Origin: Polymyxa betae A26-41
Taxonomy: Eukaryota > Protista > Endomyxa: Phytomyxea
Length of the DNA: 51,578 nucleotides
Direction: 5' to 3'
NCBI GenBank assembly: GCA_003693705.1
Contig: RBZT01000661.1
Coordinates: 1 to 51,578 of the forward strand
Part shown: piece by piece, positions 19,601-28,408 of the stretch
How the letters are laid out: every line of letters begins with the position of its first letter
Position numbering within the stretch: position 1 is the stretch's first letter
Program-made: the position numbers and the translations under genes
Notes under the pieces: model-generated
The model's input: the letters and a program-made list of their open reading frames with translations, nothing else
Told to the model about the DNA's origin: nothing
Database searches by the model: none

Positions 19601-21620
19601 TCGCTTGCTTGCCAAACACCAACCTGTCAATGAAACTATTTGTGACGTAAGTCTATGTTTAAGTGAAATTTCTGTTTTACTCTTTAGTTTATTTCCTGAA
19701 GTCAGTATCACTCTTTTATGGAAATCACTAACCAGGTTAATTTCTAGGCTGTGTTCGATTTGGCTCTCGATCGACATAATCATAACGTTCCTACCAAGTC
19801 AACAAGCGGGCTTGGGCCCCGGGTGGAAGATTTTCCAAATGTGATTATTCACCCCGAAGCAATCCGATTATTACTGGAATTGCTACGCTTGGCTTCCAGT
19901 CGGCCAACGCTGCATCTGCGCTATATTGAGCGTCTCGATGAACTAATCGAATCGCGATCGAACCTAAATATTATCCTGGCCGAACCATGGTTGCATTGGT
20001 GTAGGCAATATCTGGAAGGTATTGGAAGGTTTCATTCTGTTGAACGTCCGCAAGTTGCCAGCCCGATATACCAACCTGAATCTTCCGCATTCACCGATAC
20101 GGTTCGTGGAAAATGTTTGAAGATTGCCTGACGTTTCAAAATCTCAAATCATGTTTTTCAGCGCTAATCCACTGTGGTTTGCTTTTTCAACAGTCTTTTC
20201 TGAAAACTGTATGATTGATTTTCTATAGGAATCGGTTTCAACGTCGTCAGTGTTATCATCAACTCGGGGTGATAATGTTGAAAGGCATCGAGCACGACTG
20301 GTTTCCCGCTTTGTTCGTTTAATTCAGAAAATTGTGATCCGCGACCTGTCGTGGCACAGCGGTCGCGCTTCTTGCCTACCGACACTGCTGTCGATGGTGG
20401 AGGCGTCAGAATTTGTCTCCTTAGTGGTTGATCGAGTGCTTGGCCATTTTGAGAAGTATGGGCCTTTGTGATTCTTTTTGAGGGATTTTTACAATGTTTG
20501 TTCGTAGGCATCCTCGACTTGACGAATCCGATGCACATTGTCTCATCCGCAATTTGGCCCGTATCATCGACTCGATTGATGAACTTTGTGGAACCGGGGA
20601 TAAAACGATTTCTGGAAAATGGTCGGTGCGGCTTATTCACCTCATCAATCTTCTGGCGTCGCAAAACAATGGCGACATCAGAGCGCGTATGAAACAGAAT
20701 GGCTTATTTGATCTTCGAGATCAACTGCTGTTGCGTTTTTGCCAGCAACCGTGTTCGTCTTCCGACAGGTATACAAGTGCTCTTTGCAATTTGTTGTCTT
20801 ACAGGCCTAGGTTCGTTGCTTTATCGCAGCTGTCAATGGATGCTGTTGCATCCGATGCAAAGTTTCGAAGTTCCGATGGAATTTTATACCTGCTACGTTG
20901 GTTTATTTGCGACGACGACCTTGCTCAGCTTCGGTTTCTTTTGCTCGATGCATTACGGCGTCGCTTAGGGCAGAATCAAGAAGCCCGAAAAGATCTCGAA
21001 CGTGCTGTTTCCGATCCCGATATCATTCAACAGTTGCTGGAGTCTTCCAAAACAGATGCTGAGTTCATATCCTGGTTCTTTGCCAGTGAAAGAGACATTC
21101 AACGTCAAGCGATTGTCACTCGCTTAGAAAAATCATTGCAAATAACAGAAGTATCTGCCCGCAAACAGTTTGAGAAAGTCGATGAAAGGCGACAAAAGAG
21201 GATACGCTCCAGGCTTGATACTCTTGGAAAGGCCGCTGCCGCTTCAGAGCGTGCTGTTCAACACATCTTGGAAAAATCCGAATTTGTCGTCGGGCGATTC
21301 TCGAAGCTACTTTCAACACAAATGGTATGCTACGGTTGTCTTCTTTCTTGTGACCACCGTTAACGCTTTTACAGGCGCTATCAGCAGAAGCGAGAAGGTC
21401 GCGCCTAGAGCTAGGCGCCAGCGTTTATGCAAATCGATGTCGGAATACTTGCAGCATTCTCGAAAACCGTTTATCATCCGGCAAAGCTTGTACCTTGTGT
21501 TCGAATACGTTCGAAACGAGGTGGGAGCTGATCTGTCACCTGAGTCTTGATCATTGGTCTGGCGAAGTCCAGGCTACATCTGTAAGCACTGTCGATTCCC
21601 CTCCAACCGTATTGACATGA
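13690..21620 (+). CDS. Large ARM/ConA-like (neurobeachin/Lvs/BEACH-family N-terminal-like) protein with coiled coil and terminal C2H2 zinc finger, multi-exon
   Basis: ARM-like helical exons (EIARLDGFRKILGLL, REFARIKGYSSI, DFERQNGFEMLSYCL). ConA/LamG-like block (GYSVVFWFKI, WHHLVLTH, GQIGNVHVFEGCL...FALGP). Last exon contains CTLCSNTFETRWELICHLSLDH. Start, stop and exon borders are approximate. Confidence 0.7.
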
Positions 21621-21738
21621 TGATTCCGTTGTTCATACTTCATCTATATTGTCTAATTATTCTACACATTATTAAATAACAGAACAGACATCTTCCAGTC
21701 TCAACATTGTGCGTAGAACTATCTTTGTTATTAATGCA

Positions 21739-22057
21739 ATGACGACTGAGATTATCGTTTACGAACCGCCATCCTCCCGGATGAGCATTGTCGTCAGCGG
21801 GTCTGGGCTCCGTCTCGACTCGATACCTGTGCTTAGGATGACGTAGATATCTGCTGCTGTTCGGCGTCCTGCTGATCTGGGTTGGGACCATTTACGCGGT
21901 CCTGTTGTCGAAATGGATGCCGCCCATGAACCATTCAGCACTGGATTGGCTTCGACAAGACCAGTATTATTCGTTCTTAATACCGCTTTGTATTCCGGTA
22001 GCTGCTTCTACTGTCTATATCAACTGGCTCGGGTTGAAACTCTTCCGACATTCTTAA
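21739..22057 (+). CDS. PIGY: GPI-GlcNAc transferase subunit Y (PIG-Y/Eri1 family)
   Basis: Two exons (intron 21801-21846) give MTTEIIVYEPPSSRMSIVVSGYLLLFGVLLIWVGTIYAVLLSKWMPPMNHSALDWLRQDQYYSFLIPLCIPVAASTVYINWLGLKLFRHS*. This matches the PIG-Y pattern SK..P...D.YY..LIP...PV...Y..W...K.F.H. Confidence 0.8.
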
Positions 22058-22229
22058 GCTCCAACAAACCTGTTCATACAATATAACCGTAGCCGGTATG
22101 TATCGACATCTTCCATAAATTATATATTTCCCTCCACTCGTTCTTTAAATTAATCTGATTTGTACAGTATGGTAATCTCGTGTAGATGTCGTAAAAGTGC
22201 AACCTTCATGTCAATGCGATCATCTTTGA

Positions 22230-23519
22230 TTAAGAAGCGAATTTTGATTGCCGACCCAATTCACTTTTTAAAAATCGCGGTACACAATTCTGCTGCAGGA
22301 GTCTCTCAATCTCTATCTGGGCGCCGTTAAACAAATTCACGTCCCCATCGTCCAGATGCGCTTCAATACTGTCCAGCTGTTGTGACGATATATTGATTGC
22401 AAATGCGGACGATTGCACACAGAACATGTTGTAGATGTCGCGAATCGTTTGTTGGACGGCGCTATCATCTTCCAACAAATCATACCGGAAGTTCGTCAAC
22501 GAAAATTTCGGCTGTCCGGGGTTTCTTGAAAACGATATGGTGTTTCTGGCTTCCCGGCTCCTAAGCATTTTCTGCAAGCGCTGGACGGCCATTAAAAAAT
22601 ACAAATTTTCAATACAGAATTCTGTAAGAAGGAACTGCTGAAAGGCATCGAGGACGTCCGGGCGACTGAGAATTTGGCGGACCGTGACCGTGCTCTGGAC
22701 CGGTTCCATCTCCTGATACGACCATCGAATTGGCAGAATAATCGAAACAAACCATTGCACCTGGATACAGACGAAGTAGAACAGGCCTAAGACCGGCCAC
22801 TGATACTGATCGAAATCGTTGACGGGAGGGATTAGCCACAGGACGATCTGTATCATCGACAGTCGAAATTGGATCGTGAGCTCCCATTTTATATGGAACC
22901 CATCGACGACATTCCGCATCATGAAGGCCAAATAACCCAATAAAAGCGTCCAAAACAGATACCAGTATTGCTGAATTGGGGCGACCTGCGGCGACCTCGC
23001 GCATTGGTTCTCGTCGAGAATTTCGGGCATGGTCGCAATGACGATGTTGAAGGCTGTGACAGGTATCATGACCAGGATCCAGAACGGCGCCTGAAACCTT
23101 CGCGTCAGCGCCCATTTATTGTGCAGCAGCCAGAGATCAAATTGCGTCAGGCTGGCGATTGGCACCAACGCCTTGGTCGGCGCCACTGACAAGTTCATGA
23201 AGATCTTGGCCCGATTTAATCGATACGTGAGATAATGGGTCAGATAGCGCAAGTTGAACGCCACGACGGACACCGACGCGAAATAGTTCATGGCCACGAA
23301 CGTCGCGAGACAATTGGTGGGCGAGATAATTCGCAGCAAAGTCAGGCACATATGTGCCATATAGGACCAGTACGCAACGATCACCGTCCGCGGCATTCGC
23401 TGTCGGATCGGTGTCTGATGTCGTCGAGCATAGAACAGGGCGCATGCGACCGATTGCGTAACGGCAACGGCAATGCAAGCGGCAATTAAGGCGCGCGTCG
23501 CGCCTGAGAGCGCCAACAT
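22230..23519 (-). CDS. 7TM-RGS protein (multi-pass receptor fused to regulator of G-protein signalling domain)
   Basis: About seven hydrophobic segments, with RRHQTPIRQR after TM1. RGS motifs FQQFLLTEFCIENLYFL, IYNMFCVQSSAFAINIS and LFNGAQIEIERLLQQNCVPRFLKS. Intronless. Confidence 0.9.
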   Translation of the reverse strand: MLALSGATRALIAACIAVAVTQSVACALFYARRHQTPIRQRMPRTVIVAYWSYMAHMCLTLLRIISPTNCLATFVAMNYFASVSVVAFNLRYLTHYLTYRLNRAKIFMNLSVAPTKALVPIASLTQFDLWLLHNKWALTRRFQAPFWILVMIPVTAFNIVIATMPEILDENQCARSPQVAPIQQYWYLFWTLLLGYLAFMMRNVVDGFHIKWELTIQFRLSMIQIVLWLIPPVNDFDQYQWPVLGLFYFVCIQVQWFVSIILPIRWSYQEMEPVQSTVTVRQILSRPDVLDAFQQFLLTEFCIENLYFLMAVQRLQKMLRSREARNTISFSRNPGQPKFSLTNFRYDLLEDDSAVQQTIRDIYNMFCVQSSAFAINISSQQLDSIEAHLDDGDVNLFNGAQIEIERLLQQNCVPRFLKSELGRQSKFAS

Positions 23520-26264
23520 TTAGACGATGATCCGCGACCGTACTCGCTCGTGCCCGGATACGAACATGTTGAACGATAACGAACTTAGCAATTGAAGATT
23601 AGCGATGATGTTGTCCTCGCCGTGGTCGGGGACCGCCACGAATTCGTCGATGGCGGTCATGATGCATTTCCGCAGGGCCAGTACGTAGGTCAGGCACGGG
23701 TCGGTCACTACGCTGCGGACGCGGTCCTTCCAGGTCGCCAGCTGTGCGATACAGCGCGATCGCAAAGTCGTGATCTGCAGCCCGGCGCTAATCACCTGGA
23801 ACTCCAACAGGCACGACTGCAGACGCTCGGTCATACTGCCCCGGTAGGCGCGGAGTTCTTCGGCCAGGGCACGATCGTCTTCCAGGATGGACATCATGGC
23901 CAAGGCGGCGACAATCTGGTTCGGGGCACCTCCATGCAGGTCGCCACGTAGCTCGTCCAAGGCCTGCTCCTTGCGGAGCGTTCGCGACCGGAAGAATGCC
24001 GCTGCGGCATCCGCATCGAACGAGACGCATTCGTAGATCGTCCTGGCTGGCATCTGCGATGAGGTCGTTGAACGCCGCGATGCTCGATTCACATAAAGCA
24101 GATCGAATCGGATTTGGACAGCGACGATTCCGGCGATGAAGGCGTCGAGCGTGATTGATTCGCGAGCAGTGACGGCAGCTCTAATAGCGGCCCGGATTAC
24201 ATCGGGACCTTGTTGCCACTGGGCCATATTCCATGACTGTGATCCAACACCAATTAATGATACAGCTGCCAGTCGGCGCTGACACTGTTGCACGTAACCG
24301 AACAGGGCCGTCATAAAATCCGCCACGGCTGTCTCGAACCGATCCGCCACCATCTCCATCGTCACATGTACATGGACCCTGTGCGCCTCTGTGAATAATG
24401 TCCCCAGGTGGCATACTGGCCCGTGCAGGACGACCGTGCTCTGTTCCGGTATGGCGCCGCACCGTGACAGCAGATCGAAGATTTCGGCGAGGGCGGTAGC
24501 CTGACACCAATGCAGTGCCGGGGCAGTGCCGAACACGATCCCATCGTCATTGATATCGATCAGAGCGAACAGATCGTCGATATCGACATGTGGCAGCATA
24601 GCCGGGGGTGGTGGCGAAGGCGGCTTGCGTGCTGGCACAGCGAATCGCACGGCTTGCAGGGCGAACAGACCCACCAGTTTCGCATACGGATACTGTGAGA
24701 GATAGTCGCTGGTCAGGACCAGTACGGCATCGCGATATGCGAGATCGAGCTGGAAGTCGACCATATATTGAAACAGAGCGAGATCGGTATGGATGATCTG
24801 TGCAGTTTTATCAGATCTGTTGGCCACAATCCCATCCACATCCAGCAAGACATCAGCCGAAGACGATTTCGGCAATGTGGCGCCCGGGGCGATGGCGTCA
24901 CGCACGATCCGGGCCACGCCAGCCTGTAGGCGCAGGGCCTGCACGGCAACGCTATCCTGGATCGCATCGAGTATGACCATGAGGGCGGCGGCGTTATCAG
25001 CGCCGCCCTGCAGCAGGGCGCGTACGGTGGGCGCCAGCACGACCAGCTCGCTGTTCAGCGGAATCTGGACGAGTTGACTGACGTAATCGCGGACACGGCC
25101 GTACTGGTCCGCCTGGGCTTGGGCGTGATCTGCGCTGCTCGGGGCCGTGCAAGGTTGTAATGATGCGGATGCAATTTGTAAGGAGCCAGGCAGTGATTGA
25201 TTCAGACGACTGAAGAATGCCAATAGCTCGGAATTCGGGGTTCTGGACAGGAGCGTGATTAAGACGACGGATCCCAGGACCGAGTAATACCGGCCCGCGC
25301 GGAAACAAGTCTGAATCTCCGCCTGGACCTCGTCCAGAAACTGTTGACGGAACCGAGGCCCATCTGGGGCCGCCGTCAAGGACGCGTACAGGACGGCGCA
25401 ATCGCGGCTCAAAAACACGTTCAAGAACGCGGACCTCGCCGTCACCCGATCGAATGTCTGCAAGGGCGCCGTCGATTTCGGCCGGTAATGGCACACGTAT
25501 CGGATCTGGCCGACACGTAGGCTAGTATGGCCGAATACGCACCGGGCACGAATCGGGACGTTGTCGATCGTGCAACGTTTTAGGTCCTTGAAGAAAGCAT
25601 TGCGATTGGCATAAATCTGAGATAGATCCCAATCATTGCTGTCGACGGTGATGTTTAGAAATTCGTGCGGCGTCTTGTTCTGTAGTGCGATCAGATCCTG
25701 GAGAACGAATTTCGTAAATGCCGTCAGGGCTGATTGAAATTGTGACCCGGTGACGAAGACGTCGCGGGCGATCTCGATCCGGCGCGTGTCTGCGACCAGG
25801 ATCCGGCTGAGAACCGATTCAAGGGCGATCGACGGGAGTGAAATCAGCTGAACATTGTTGTCGTCGGATCGACTCAGCTGCAGGATATCATGGAAGTCGG
25901 AGTGAATCTGTCGTAGGTACATCATATCGACATATGGCATTAGCGAATCAGTTAAGGACCAGTAAGGCGTCGCAGCTGGGTCTTGGCCATGATGGTACAG
26001 GGGGCGTCCTTGTTCGGACGCTTCCGAGATGGGTGTATGAAAACGGGCGATGATCTCGGCATCGGGGATATGTAAAGCCAGCGATTTGTAAATCTCGTGT
26101 TGTTGGAAATGTTGGACCATGATCAAATATGGATTGGTGGGATAGTCTTTGACAATTGATTTGATCGCATCCCAGTAGAAATCTATGATATGATGCTGTT
26201 GTAGATAGGCATCGGCACCATACCGATCGTTCCCGAAGATCGGCCGAAAAACGCTCGACTTCAT
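23520..26264 (-). CDS. 914-aa uncharacterised protein with two Dpy-30/RIIa-like dimerisation-docking motifs and two-fold internal duplication
   Basis: Intronless long ORF with AYLQQHHIIDFYWDAIKSIVKDYPTNPYLIMVQHF and QYMVDFQLDLAYRDAVLVLTSDYLSQYPYAKLVGLF. Confidence 0.75.
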   Translation of the reverse strand: MKSSVFRPIFGNDRYGADAYLQQHHIIDFYWDAIKSIVKDYPTNPYLIMVQHFQQHEIYKSLALHIPDAEIIARFHTPISEASEQGRPLYHHGQDPAATPYWSLTDSLMPYVDMMYLRQIHSDFHDILQLSRSDDNNVQLISLPSIALESVLSRILVADTRRIEIARDVFVTGSQFQSALTAFTKFVLQDLIALQNKTPHEFLNITVDSNDWDLSQIYANRNAFFKDLKRCTIDNVPIRARCVFGHTSLRVGQIRYVCHYRPKSTAPLQTFDRVTARSAFLNVFLSRDCAVLYASLTAAPDGPRFRQQFLDEVQAEIQTCFRAGRYYSVLGSVVLITLLSRTPNSELLAFFSRLNQSLPGSLQIASASLQPCTAPSSADHAQAQADQYGRVRDYVSQLVQIPLNSELVVLAPTVRALLQGGADNAAALMVILDAIQDSVAVQALRLQAGVARIVRDAIAPGATLPKSSSADVLLDVDGIVANRSDKTAQIIHTDLALFQYMVDFQLDLAYRDAVLVLTSDYLSQYPYAKLVGLFALQAVRFAVPARKPPSPPPPAMLPHVDIDDLFALIDINDDGIVFGTAPALHWCQATALAEIFDLLSRCGAIPEQSTVVLHGPVCHLGTLFTEAHRVHVHVTMEMVADRFETAVADFMTALFGYVQQCQRRLAAVSLIGVGSQSWNMAQWQQGPDVIRAAIRAAVTARESITLDAFIAGIVAVQIRFDLLYVNRASRRSTTSSQMPARTIYECVSFDADAAAAFFRSRTLRKEQALDELRGDLHGGAPNQIVAALAMMSILEDDRALAEELRAYRGSMTERLQSCLLEFQVISAGLQITTLRSRCIAQLATWKDRVRSVVTDPCLTYVLALRKCIMTAIDEFVAVPDHGEDNIIANLQLLSSLSFNMFVSGHERVRSRIIV

Positions 26265-27166
26265 GTATAGGCGGCAAAGCCGTCTGTGACTTTCTATTCA
26301 ATCTCAACGGCTGAAATCCGCTCATGTGACGGTTATAGCCAGGCTACAAACAAACCTCGATGTACACTTTGCGCAATTCTGCTTTCTCTTTTTGAATTTT
26401 GAAGATGTTGATCTTCAATTATTTGCTGCCCCGATACCAATCGGATATCAACAAAACGTGGGCAACTGTCTTATTTAATTGATTACGTCAAAGAAGCACA
26501 GCGACATCTGCTATGTTTCGACTCTGAACACTCCTCTGCTAGGATTGGATTGGAATGGATTGGATTTACAAATTTGTTGATTTTGTCAACGGGCGGCGCG
26601 GTGACCCTCACGCAAGGCAGGTAGTACTGAGGCATCGCCTCAATATCTACAAGGGGACTCTTTTCCAGTTTCAGAGCCGATAACTATTTCACCCATTATA
26701 CTCCTCGGCTAGCTTTTTACACTTGATAAAGTCTCGCTGCAAAGTCGTCCATAAACTGATCGAAATCCCGAAAGAAGCCTATTTCCTGATTCTGACGATA
26801 ATGATTTACTGCTGATATTCAGTCTATCAGACAGCCTATGGGCGAAGGATCTAGCTTCCGACCAGTTTAACTGCTAGATATATCCCCAGCTTTCTGATAA
26901 AGCAATATGAACGTAGACAAATTGCATTTGCAAATTCGACAGAAGAAAATATCAACGGAAGAACGCTAATGTCGATTGTAGAGAAAAATGCCAGAACCGT
27001 GCTTTCGTAAGAAACCTAAATCAGAAGCCAAATCAGGATAAAAGAATTAAGTATCTCTCATTCGGGCGACACAGACTGACTCGACCGAGCCCGACTGCAT
27101 AGATTAACTGAATATACCGATCAAGTTAAAATTAATCAAAACAGCATGTATACTTTATCTCTAGGT

Positions 27167-28408
27167 TTAGATAACGGATATCTCTTCCGGTAGAATAATC
27201 TGTTGAACTGCATTAGGGAGCCCAACTCGAAATCCGAAATAATATAAATGTTCGGATATCGACAAGGTAACTGAAGGAAACTGATCACAGCATTCCTCAT
27301 CTTCTCCATTGTCGGAATTGCAAATTTTATAGGTGCTCATATCTTCGTTATACAGTACCTGAAGCACATTTAATAACGTCTTGCTGGGAATAATGGACTT
27401 ACTTCAGTTGGGACGTGTGTAGGGAAATCAGGCCCTTCGCAGGATCGACTCCATGGCAGCCAAGAACACGGAGGTAAATGAGGCACAATATCGTGATCGT
27501 GTATGACTCGGTATATCCTTCAGCATAATGTCATATCATAAGGTATTAGTCCAATCAGTTGTAACGCACTTGGATGGCAATAATGAATGAAGGTAACCTG
27601 CGAAATAGCTGTTCCCGACTCGAGGGCTGCCGAATGTGTAGATAAGCGGGTCCGGGACAAGATCGTGAAGTGCCACCGCAGCGATCAGAGCAGTAGCGCC
27701 TCCTAAAGAGTGTCCAGTAATCAAGATAGGTGTGTCTGGTGTAAACATCTAAGCAGAATACATAATAACTGTTACGTATTACTTGGATGTTCGGAAAGAT
27801 AGCTGTTTAGGGTATCACGAATATCACTTTCAACGCTCAGAAAATATTGTAGAAACCCATGATCGACAGTGGATTTAGGAACATAATCTGGCCAACGTCG
27901 TGCTGTGAACTCGATATCAGCCATAGCAGAGCTCTCGGAATAGTACGATGTCCCTCTAAAATCTATTCAGCATCGCAGGGAGATGGCGAAATAAATTAAT
28001 ACCTGAAAGCAAGTACCAAATTAGATGGGGCTGATTTCTGCACTCCTATATAACCAAAGTTTTCTTTCTCATGGCCCTAAATCCATTATTATATTAAATC
28101 AACCATGATAGAAGGCCCAGATCCATGTCCCAACCTGAAAAATCTTTAATATTTGAAGTTCAGGAACAAGTGAACAAGAATCGCAGTTCCATGTTAAGAT
28201 TGAGCTAACATCAGATAGGTAAGCCACAGACGAATATCGCACAGCCTGACAACGTAGAATTAGAGATCGATACCGCCAGGCACCATGCGCCCTAAACCTG
28301 CGTCGCACATTGGTGCGAGTATTGGGTCTGATTCTGGAAGCAATGCGATTCAACAGACACTGCTACTTGCTGTACAGCGAGCAGAACGATGAAGGCGACT
28401 ATGACCAT
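27167..28408 (-). CDS. Secreted class-3 lipase (lipase A), multi-exon
   Basis: Signal peptide MVIVAFIVLLAVQQVAVS. Motifs HGF, ITGHSLGG, YTFGSPRVGN, HDHDIVPHLPP and SEHLYYFG (Ser/Asp/His triad). Confidence 0.9.

Follow-up and report, generated by a model that had tools for sequence, protein, structure and literature searches.

A 7TM-RGS gene that begins at the codon after an orphan reading frame in Polymyxa betae, a probable case of genes packed without intergenic DNA

How can one long open reading frame (ORF) in a eukaryotic genome end exactly where the next begins, in the same frame? We address this question for a 51,578-nt window of Polymyxa betae A26-41, positions 1 to 51,578 of contig RBZT01000661.1, in which the minus strand reads ATC GTC TAA ATG TTG GCG. 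The TAA (23522-23520) closes an orphan ORF of 914 aa (23520..26264, minus strand) and the ATG (23519-23517) opens a 7TM-RGS gene of 429 aa (22230..23519, minus strand), so that stop and start form one contiguous, in-frame hexamer (23517..23522) with a spacer of zero. The first-pass annotation had pointed out this junction and offered four explanations for it: a bicistronic mRNA, readthrough into a fusion protein, overlapping transcription units, or a single gene interrupted by a nonsense change.

The junction itself held up. RNA-derived contigs from two independent studies, X3 (21846-24950) and X7 (21846-25177), span it without a single difference or gap, and an assembly error is excluded because both match exactly across 23520; the TAA, whose reality the annotation had left in question, is present in each. 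The unusual part is the zero spacer, because a shared frame alone has a 1-in-3 chance. In a survey of 222 kb of the genome, no other two ATG-to-stop ORFs of 200 aa or more abutted; its power is low because introns split most genes here and few intronless ORFs are left. Both ORFs are intronless and GC-rich, as had been noted: GC content is 0.55-0.60 in the block versus 0.41-0.47 in the flanks, and no sense-strand intron was seen within the two ORFs in the RNA contigs. GC3 is of coding type (0.67-0.9) right up to the junction from either side, and the composition profile contained no recognizable promoter-like stretch near it.

The downstream ORF has the layout of a 7TM-RGS protein, a family reported in protists (PMC3865004, PMC3971589). 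Pfam RGS (PF00615, 1.4e-18) covers the C-terminal residues 281-421, and the AF2 model (pLDDT 86.5) consists of a short N-terminus, seven long helices (6-31, 43-65, 67-112, 140-162, 179-203, 210-239 and 243-269), with which the hydropathy peaks concur, and an RGS bundle that Foldseek matched to solved RGS domains (TMt 0.8-0.9). With seven N-terminal transmembrane (TM) helices followed by a predicted cytosolic RGS domain, the product resembles plant AtRGS1-type proteins and is a putative G-protein regulator of the 7TM-RGS type. It differs from other 7TM-RGS proteins in its low identity to every relative (about 20-30%), and its gene is intronless and GC-rich, whereas two paralogues in the same genome carry one intron each.

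Every homologue detected is a stand-alone protein, 420-480 aa long and colinear with the RGS product; the alignments begin at query residues 8-26, matched to residues 11-28 of the hit. In an N-terminal alignment of eight sequences, which included the two same-genome paralogues and three P. brassicae proteins, starts fell within 0-17 residues of M1, and R32, P37, I38 and R41 were invariant. All four precede M42, the next methionine, which itself falls past the first hydrophobic helix; the earlier claim that the protein requires the junction ATG is thereby upheld. All five differences between strain X12 and the window in this ORF lie at third codon positions, and purifying selection acts on the RGS protein. 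Judged from sequence comparison, the ORF encodes a complete, independent protein. Stand-alone relatives whose N-termini align with M1 speak against an ancestral fusion and against a single gene that has been broken.

The upstream ORF, a 925-codon open frame, is intronless, single copy and predicted to be mostly helical. Its codon composition (GC1/2/3 = 0.62/0.42/0.66) is coding-like throughout, with GC1 and GC2 of the final ~45 codons below those of the ORF body. Differences from strain X12 comprised four synonymous and five non-synonymous changes. No relatives of the protein were found by a word-index search over residues 1-914, in PDB sequences or in the ESM Atlas, and it had no detectable similarity to the 543-aa protein encoded next to a P. 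brassicae RGS gene. Neither protein of the pair had a record under exact-sequence look-up, and a scan of JGI metagenomes turned up no relative. The single-sequence AF2 model (pLDDT 36) was too poor for a fold search. An internal duplication was considered and rejected, as BLASTP of the two halves was not significant (E = 0.14). The first-pass annotation had described the protein as a docking-domain scaffold that might form a signalling module with the G-protein regulator; Pfam searches of the whole protein and of pieces, at E up to 10, gave no match, RIIa and Dpy-30 included, and neither the scaffold nor the module gained support.

RNA contig cover runs without a gap from a BEACH-like gene through PIG-Y and the RGS gene into the 914-aa ORF. 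PIG-Y (21739..22057, plus strand), the convergent neighbour, has two exons, with a Pfam match (3.5e-17) on exon 2, a 46-nt GT..AG intron (21800/1-21845/6) in three RNA runs and an RNA contig continuous with the RGS region. Assembled contigs lose rare variants and reveal neither strand nor transcript ends. The only strand marker within the two ORFs is a 49-nt plus-strand intron (25178..25226, GTAAGG..AATAG; splice joint 25177>25227 in X3 and X7) that lies antisense to the 914-aa ORF and belongs to a non-coding RNA, in which open frames that cross the joint do not exceed 43 codons. This antisense RNA was assembled solely in spliced form, and depth arithmetic leaves no unspliced contig. Positions 25178-25226 were without contig cover in all three RNA studies, though a sense mRNA would have to include them. 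Because the strand marker is antisense, the RNA that bridges the junction may be antisense as well, and unstranded RNA cover in this genome is unusable as evidence of sense expression. X12 contig depths were alike on either side of the junction (6 and 7.6), and the raw-read RNA run X22 had zero reads on the window.

We favour, with a little more confidence than doubt, two separate genes with zero intergenic DNA and overlapping transcription units, packed into the compact genome of a plasmodiophorid. The upstream orphan gene would terminate at the TAA and the stand-alone RGS gene begin at the next codon; with no spacer, the two transcription units must overlap. We infer the transcript boundaries as follows. 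The RGS mRNA would most likely start ~50-150 nt or less before the end of the upstream ORF, and the upstream mRNA would end inside or beyond the RGS gene. The RGS ATG would then be either the first AUG or the one that follows a 15-codon uORF: the 15 codons that run from the final in-frame ATG of the 914-aa ORF to its end (23520..23567, minus strand) could act as such a uORF, ending right beside the RGS ATG, if the RGS mRNA starts within ~140 nt upstream. The zero spacer, the unrelated products and the completeness of the downstream protein are what minimal intergenic DNA between independent genes should look like. Against overlapping units, no RGS transcription start site was seen, no promoter-like stretch marks the junction, and the regions upstream of the RGS gene and its two paralogues share no motif; moreover, the similar X12 depths are equally consistent with a single spanning RNA. 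The RGS coding sequence contains two poly(A)-like hexamers (AATAAA at 23120, ATTAAA at 23220), but chance alone predicts ~0.6 and there is none 3' of the RGS stop; they were set aside.

Such packing has parallels. In compact genomes (Plasmodiophora brassicae, microsporidia and nucleomorphs), intergenic space can approach zero, adjacent genes come to contain promoters and terminators, and RNA can extend over more than one gene; overlapping UTRs have been published for the P. brassicae genome (PMC4815078). The P. betae locus is similar in its continuous RNA cover over neighbouring genes. At the P. brassicae loci we compared, the RGS genes of the annotated genome are separate genes, with gaps of only 130-195 bp to neighbours on the same strand and of 25-39 bp to convergent neighbours; at the P. 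betae junction, by contrast, the gap is exactly 0 nt and the frame is kept. The RGS relatives closest to the P. betae protein, from P. brassicae at about 30% identity, stand in other contexts, for example as tandem RGS pairs. If the arrangement is ordinary packing, it would represent a clean 0-nt extreme of a gene compaction that is known from plasmodiophorids.

An unlikely alternative sees the 914-aa ORF as an orphan, either young or in decay, that is not expressed in the life stages sampled; functionally, the locus would then amount to the RGS gene and an upstream region transcribed mainly antisense. The abutment would be a by-product, for example of an ORF extended until the final stop available ahead of the RGS ATG. 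The failure of every search to find relatives, the share of non-synonymous strain differences (5/9), the uncovered interval that a sense mRNA must contain and the lower GC1 and GC2 of the last ~45 codons are all consistent with this view. On the other side, chance alone would practically never yield a 925-codon open frame in DNA of 58% GC (we estimate about e^-33), and the GC1/2/3 pattern is coding-like along the whole ORF. A minor sense mRNA could also have dropped out of the contigs as a rare variant, and the RNA sampled came from stages other than zoospores and resting spores.

We consider it quite improbable that a ~4.2 kb sense mRNA carries both ORFs, with ribosomes that terminate at the UAA reinitiating at the adjoining AUG to make the RGS protein. 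Viral termination-reinitiation takes place at UAAUG or AUGA stop-start overlaps, as in caliciviruses, influenza B BM2 and hypovirus, and reinitiation is less efficient after longer ORFs. The P. betae junction is like these viral sites in that stop and start are adjacent, and coding composition reaches the junction without a spacer. The X3 and X7 contigs are also unbroken across it, with similar X12 depths on both sides, although the region's sole strand marker is antisense and the bridging contigs are possibly not sense RNA. Unlike the viral cases, it has no UGGGA (TURBS motif 1) within 200 nt upstream and no local RNA structure (fold z-scores of -0.02 and -0.56), and its upstream ORF is a cellular one of 914 codons rather than a very short one. 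Precedents for multi-gene mRNAs exist in compact eukaryotic genomes, according to work cited in PMC4815078, and in green algae, and reinitiation efficiency declines with upstream ORF length (PMC11291117). Green-algal bicistronic genes share the single strand and the very short or overlapping inter-ORF distance with our locus; they depend on leaky scanning past an ORF1 that is short (median about 290-360 nt) and ATG-depleted (PMC11291117). In contrast, the P. betae ORF1 is 2,745 nt long, with 50 ATGs in 2,742 nt versus 33.7 expected, which rules out leaky scanning. RNA contigs that bridge the two ORFs are present, their strand is unassignable, and every known enabling feature of a bicistron is absent. 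If the RGS protein really were translated from a two-gene mRNA, it would be a rare cellular case of reinitiation past a long ORF, efficient without any known tethering motif.

Very improbable, finally, is a single gene encoding a fusion of ~1,320-1,344 aa, in which the TAA is bypassed by readthrough or an in-frame intron, or is a recent nonsense mutation: the shared frame and an 81-nt GT..AG candidate intron over the stop (23584-23504, GTTCGT..CTCTCAG) would allow it, but none of the relatives is extended at its N-terminus by a long segment that aligns with the 914-aa protein, the best matches (420-480 aa) being colinear from M1, and a cytosolic 914-aa N-terminus ahead of seven TM helices would, on the predicted topology, leave the RGS domain facing away from the cytosol. 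The candidate intron, the only in-frame one, was rejected, as the X3 and X7 contigs pass the junction unspliced and RNA-supported local introns measure 44-49 nt. UAA followed by A is a strong stop context, and no significant structure lies downstream (z = -0.56), unlike what programmed readthrough would call for. Among the four explanations first offered, overlapping units therefore fits best, and the readthrough fusion and the nonsense-broken gene are disfavoured; extreme gene packing is most likely, and a special translation system or a fusion at the junction less so.

No Rfam match was found in 21500-27200, and a scan for bacterial-type promoters and terminators, irrelevant for a eukaryotic locus, was empty. 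If the arrangement is indeed packing, the locus would be a useful test case in annotating the still unannotated P. betae genome, where gene callers may wrongly fuse the pair or drop one of the two genes.

On the minus strand, the TAA (23522-23520) that ends a 914-aa ORF (23520..26264) directly abuts the ATG (23519-23517) of a 429-aa ORF (22230..23519) in the same frame, reading ...ATC GTC TAA ATG TTG GCG... The first-pass annotation had described this abutting in-frame junction, and its coordinates, frame and GC contrast all check out, with a GC content of 0.55-0.60 in the two-ORF block versus 0.41-0.47 in the flanks. A single GC3 hump extends across the block (22233-26264, minus strand), rising from ~0.54 where the 914-aa ORF begins to 0.8-0.9 just before the junction and dropping to 0.38 over the final 43 codons of the downstream ORF. 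Base composition treats the two ORFs as one unit.

The 429-aa protein carries a Pfam RGS domain (1.4e-18, aa 281-421). Its AlphaFold model, built from a 32-sequence input (pLDDT 86.5, pTM 0.81), contains seven long helices (6-31, 43-65, 67-112, 140-162, 179-203, 210-239 and 243-269) followed by an RGS bundle that matches solved RGS domains with target TM-scores of 0.8-0.9, which identifies it as a 7TM-RGS protein. An exhaustive profile search returned 130 relatives, the best of which are 420-480 aa long and colinear from the N-terminus, since query residues 8-26 align to their residues 11-28. The closest came from the chromosome-level assembly GCA_036867785.1, which we take to be Plasmodiophora brassicae; this assembly is annotated and the P. 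betae draft apparently is not. When eight N-termini were aligned (the window RGS, two P. betae paralogues, three P. brassicae proteins and two others), all starts fell within 0-17 residues of M1, and R32, P37, I38 and R41, which precede M42, were conserved in every sequence. M42 is indeed the next methionine and lies past the first hydrophobic helix. The starts near M1 and the conserved residues ahead of M42 therefore indicate a complete stand-alone protein that needs the ATG at 23519; the need for this ATG agrees with the earlier proposal. A second strain, represented by RNA contig set X12, differs at five sites in this ORF, all at third codon positions and four of them synonymous, which indicates purifying selection. 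The 7TM-RGS genes form a small plasmodiophorid family: in P. brassicae there are two tandem pairs (464+462 aa and 466+452 aa) along with one solitary gene close to a class-3 lipase, with RGS loci at L001 6413-9389 and L004 6435-9359, and P. betae has two paralogues with one intron each (contigs C944 and C26), the window copy being intronless.

Contigs from three separate studies (X3, X7 and X12) skip GT..AG or CT..AC introns of 44-49 nt and are therefore RNA-derived. RNA-supported introns in this stretch are all within that narrow size range, including those of 46 nt (27108-27153) and 44 nt (27356-27399) in the minus-strand lipase gene. One X3 contig joins 21699-21799 to 21846-24950 and one X7 contig joins 21846-25177 to 25227-25544; both cross the junction unspliced and without differences, so the TAA is genuine and present in RNA, and the dominant RNA form in these contigs contains no intron that removes it. 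The sole in-frame GT..AG candidate for splicing out the stop (81 nt, 23584-23504) exceeds the RNA-supported local introns in length and is unused in the contigs. X12 contigs end on the G of the RGS ATG (23517) and restart at 23574, leaving a 56-nt hole (23518-23573) centered on the junction that may be due to chance because contig depth in X12 is only 6-7.6. Together, the contigs establish continuous transcription but are compatible with either the presence or the absence of a sense bicistronic mRNA; a stranded raw-read run (X22) placed 0 reads on the window.

Within the two ORFs, strand is indicated solely by a 49-nt plus-strand intron (25178-25226, GTAAGG...AATAG), antisense to the 914-aa ORF. 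Two studies assembled only the spliced form, in contigs covering 21723-25544. Bin depths equal the prediction from the spliced contig alone in X3 (19.3 x 148/197 = 14.5) and X7 (17.1 x 148/197 = 12.9), and one X12 contig begins exactly at 25227; these 49 nt, obligatory in a sense mRNA, are therefore uncovered in all three studies, with no X3, X7 or X12 contig spanning them. The spliced RNA is non-coding across the joint, where a script-based stop count put the longest open frame at no more than 43 codons. These contigs additionally include the 46-nt intron of PIG-Y, a two-exon plus-strand gene (21739-22057; Pfam PIG-Y 3.5e-17 on exon 2) that is spliced in all three studies and converges on the RGS gene, with stops 172 bp apart. 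Hence a large part of the RNA covering the 914-aa ORF is antisense, as perhaps is the RNA at the junction; the spliced plus-strand RNA may represent read-through from PIG-Y or an independent antisense RNA.

We consider it most likely, and on balance probable, that these are two independent genes whose transcription units overlap, an extreme case of gene compaction. RNA contigs abut or overlap across both the 118-bp BEACH-like/PIG-Y spacer and the 172-bp convergent PIG-Y/RGS spacer. Around the P. brassicae RGS genes, same-strand CDSs are 130-195 bp apart and convergent CDSs 25-39 bp apart, and that genome has shrunken intergenic space with overlapping UTRs, a compaction likened to that of microsporidia and nucleomorphs, whose mRNAs span more than one gene (PMC4815078). 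The assembly analyzed here comprises 27,085,814 bp in 1,001 contigs, one of which is the entire window; the published P. betae draft is given as 1,001 contigs, 27,085,946 bp and 45.1% GC (PMC6328671). Ahead of the RGS start, the nearest out-of-frame ATG occurs at 23667 and the nearest in-frame ones at 23660 and 23567. On this map, an RGS mRNA initiated downstream of 23565 would present the RGS AUG first, and one initiated slightly farther upstream would include a uORF of 15 codons that ends beside that AUG, an arrangement that would favor reinitiation.

It is unlikely that the orphan 914-aa ORF is silent or decaying, with the region serving the RGS gene and an antisense RNA. The ORF is an orphan: homology and domain searches, run on the two ORFs separately, detected no relatives or domains, a comparison of its two halves shows no significant similarity (E = 0.14) and its single-sequence model is unusable (pLDDT 36). 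The earlier label of docking-domain scaffold is unsupported, with no RIIa or Dpy-30 match at E up to 10. The ORF is single copy in the assembly and lies within a 925-codon open frame of coding-type composition (GC1/2/3 = 0.62/0.42/0.66); strain X12 shows four synonymous and five non-synonymous differences, some at low depth.

A true bicistronic mRNA carrying both ORFs is quite improbable. With regard to leaky scanning, the first ORF here has 914 codons and 50 ATGs versus 33.7 expected, whereas first ORFs in green-algal bicistrons are short and poor in ATGs (PMC11291117). With regard to reinitiation, no TGGGA motif occurs in the 200 nt upstream and the preceding ORF is long (914 codons); the 201-nt junction region has no notable local RNA structure (z = -0.02). 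No trans-splicing has been found in P. brassicae (PMC6053224), and there are no loose contig ends at the junction. Least probable is a single fused gene. With regard to readthrough, the stop reads UAA then A, a strong stop context, and shuffled sequences fold as well as the 86 nt that begin at the stop (z = -0.56); none of the 130 relatives has a long N-terminal extension able to match the 914-aa protein.

About 280 nt before the ATG of the 914-aa ORF lies a dispersed repeat of ~155 bp (26540-26700) with at least 40 genome copies at 73-96% identity. RNA depth there is 3-10x that of its neighbors, and loose ends are numerous, which indicates that many transcripts contain the repeat; it has no Rfam match and looks MITE- or SINE-like.
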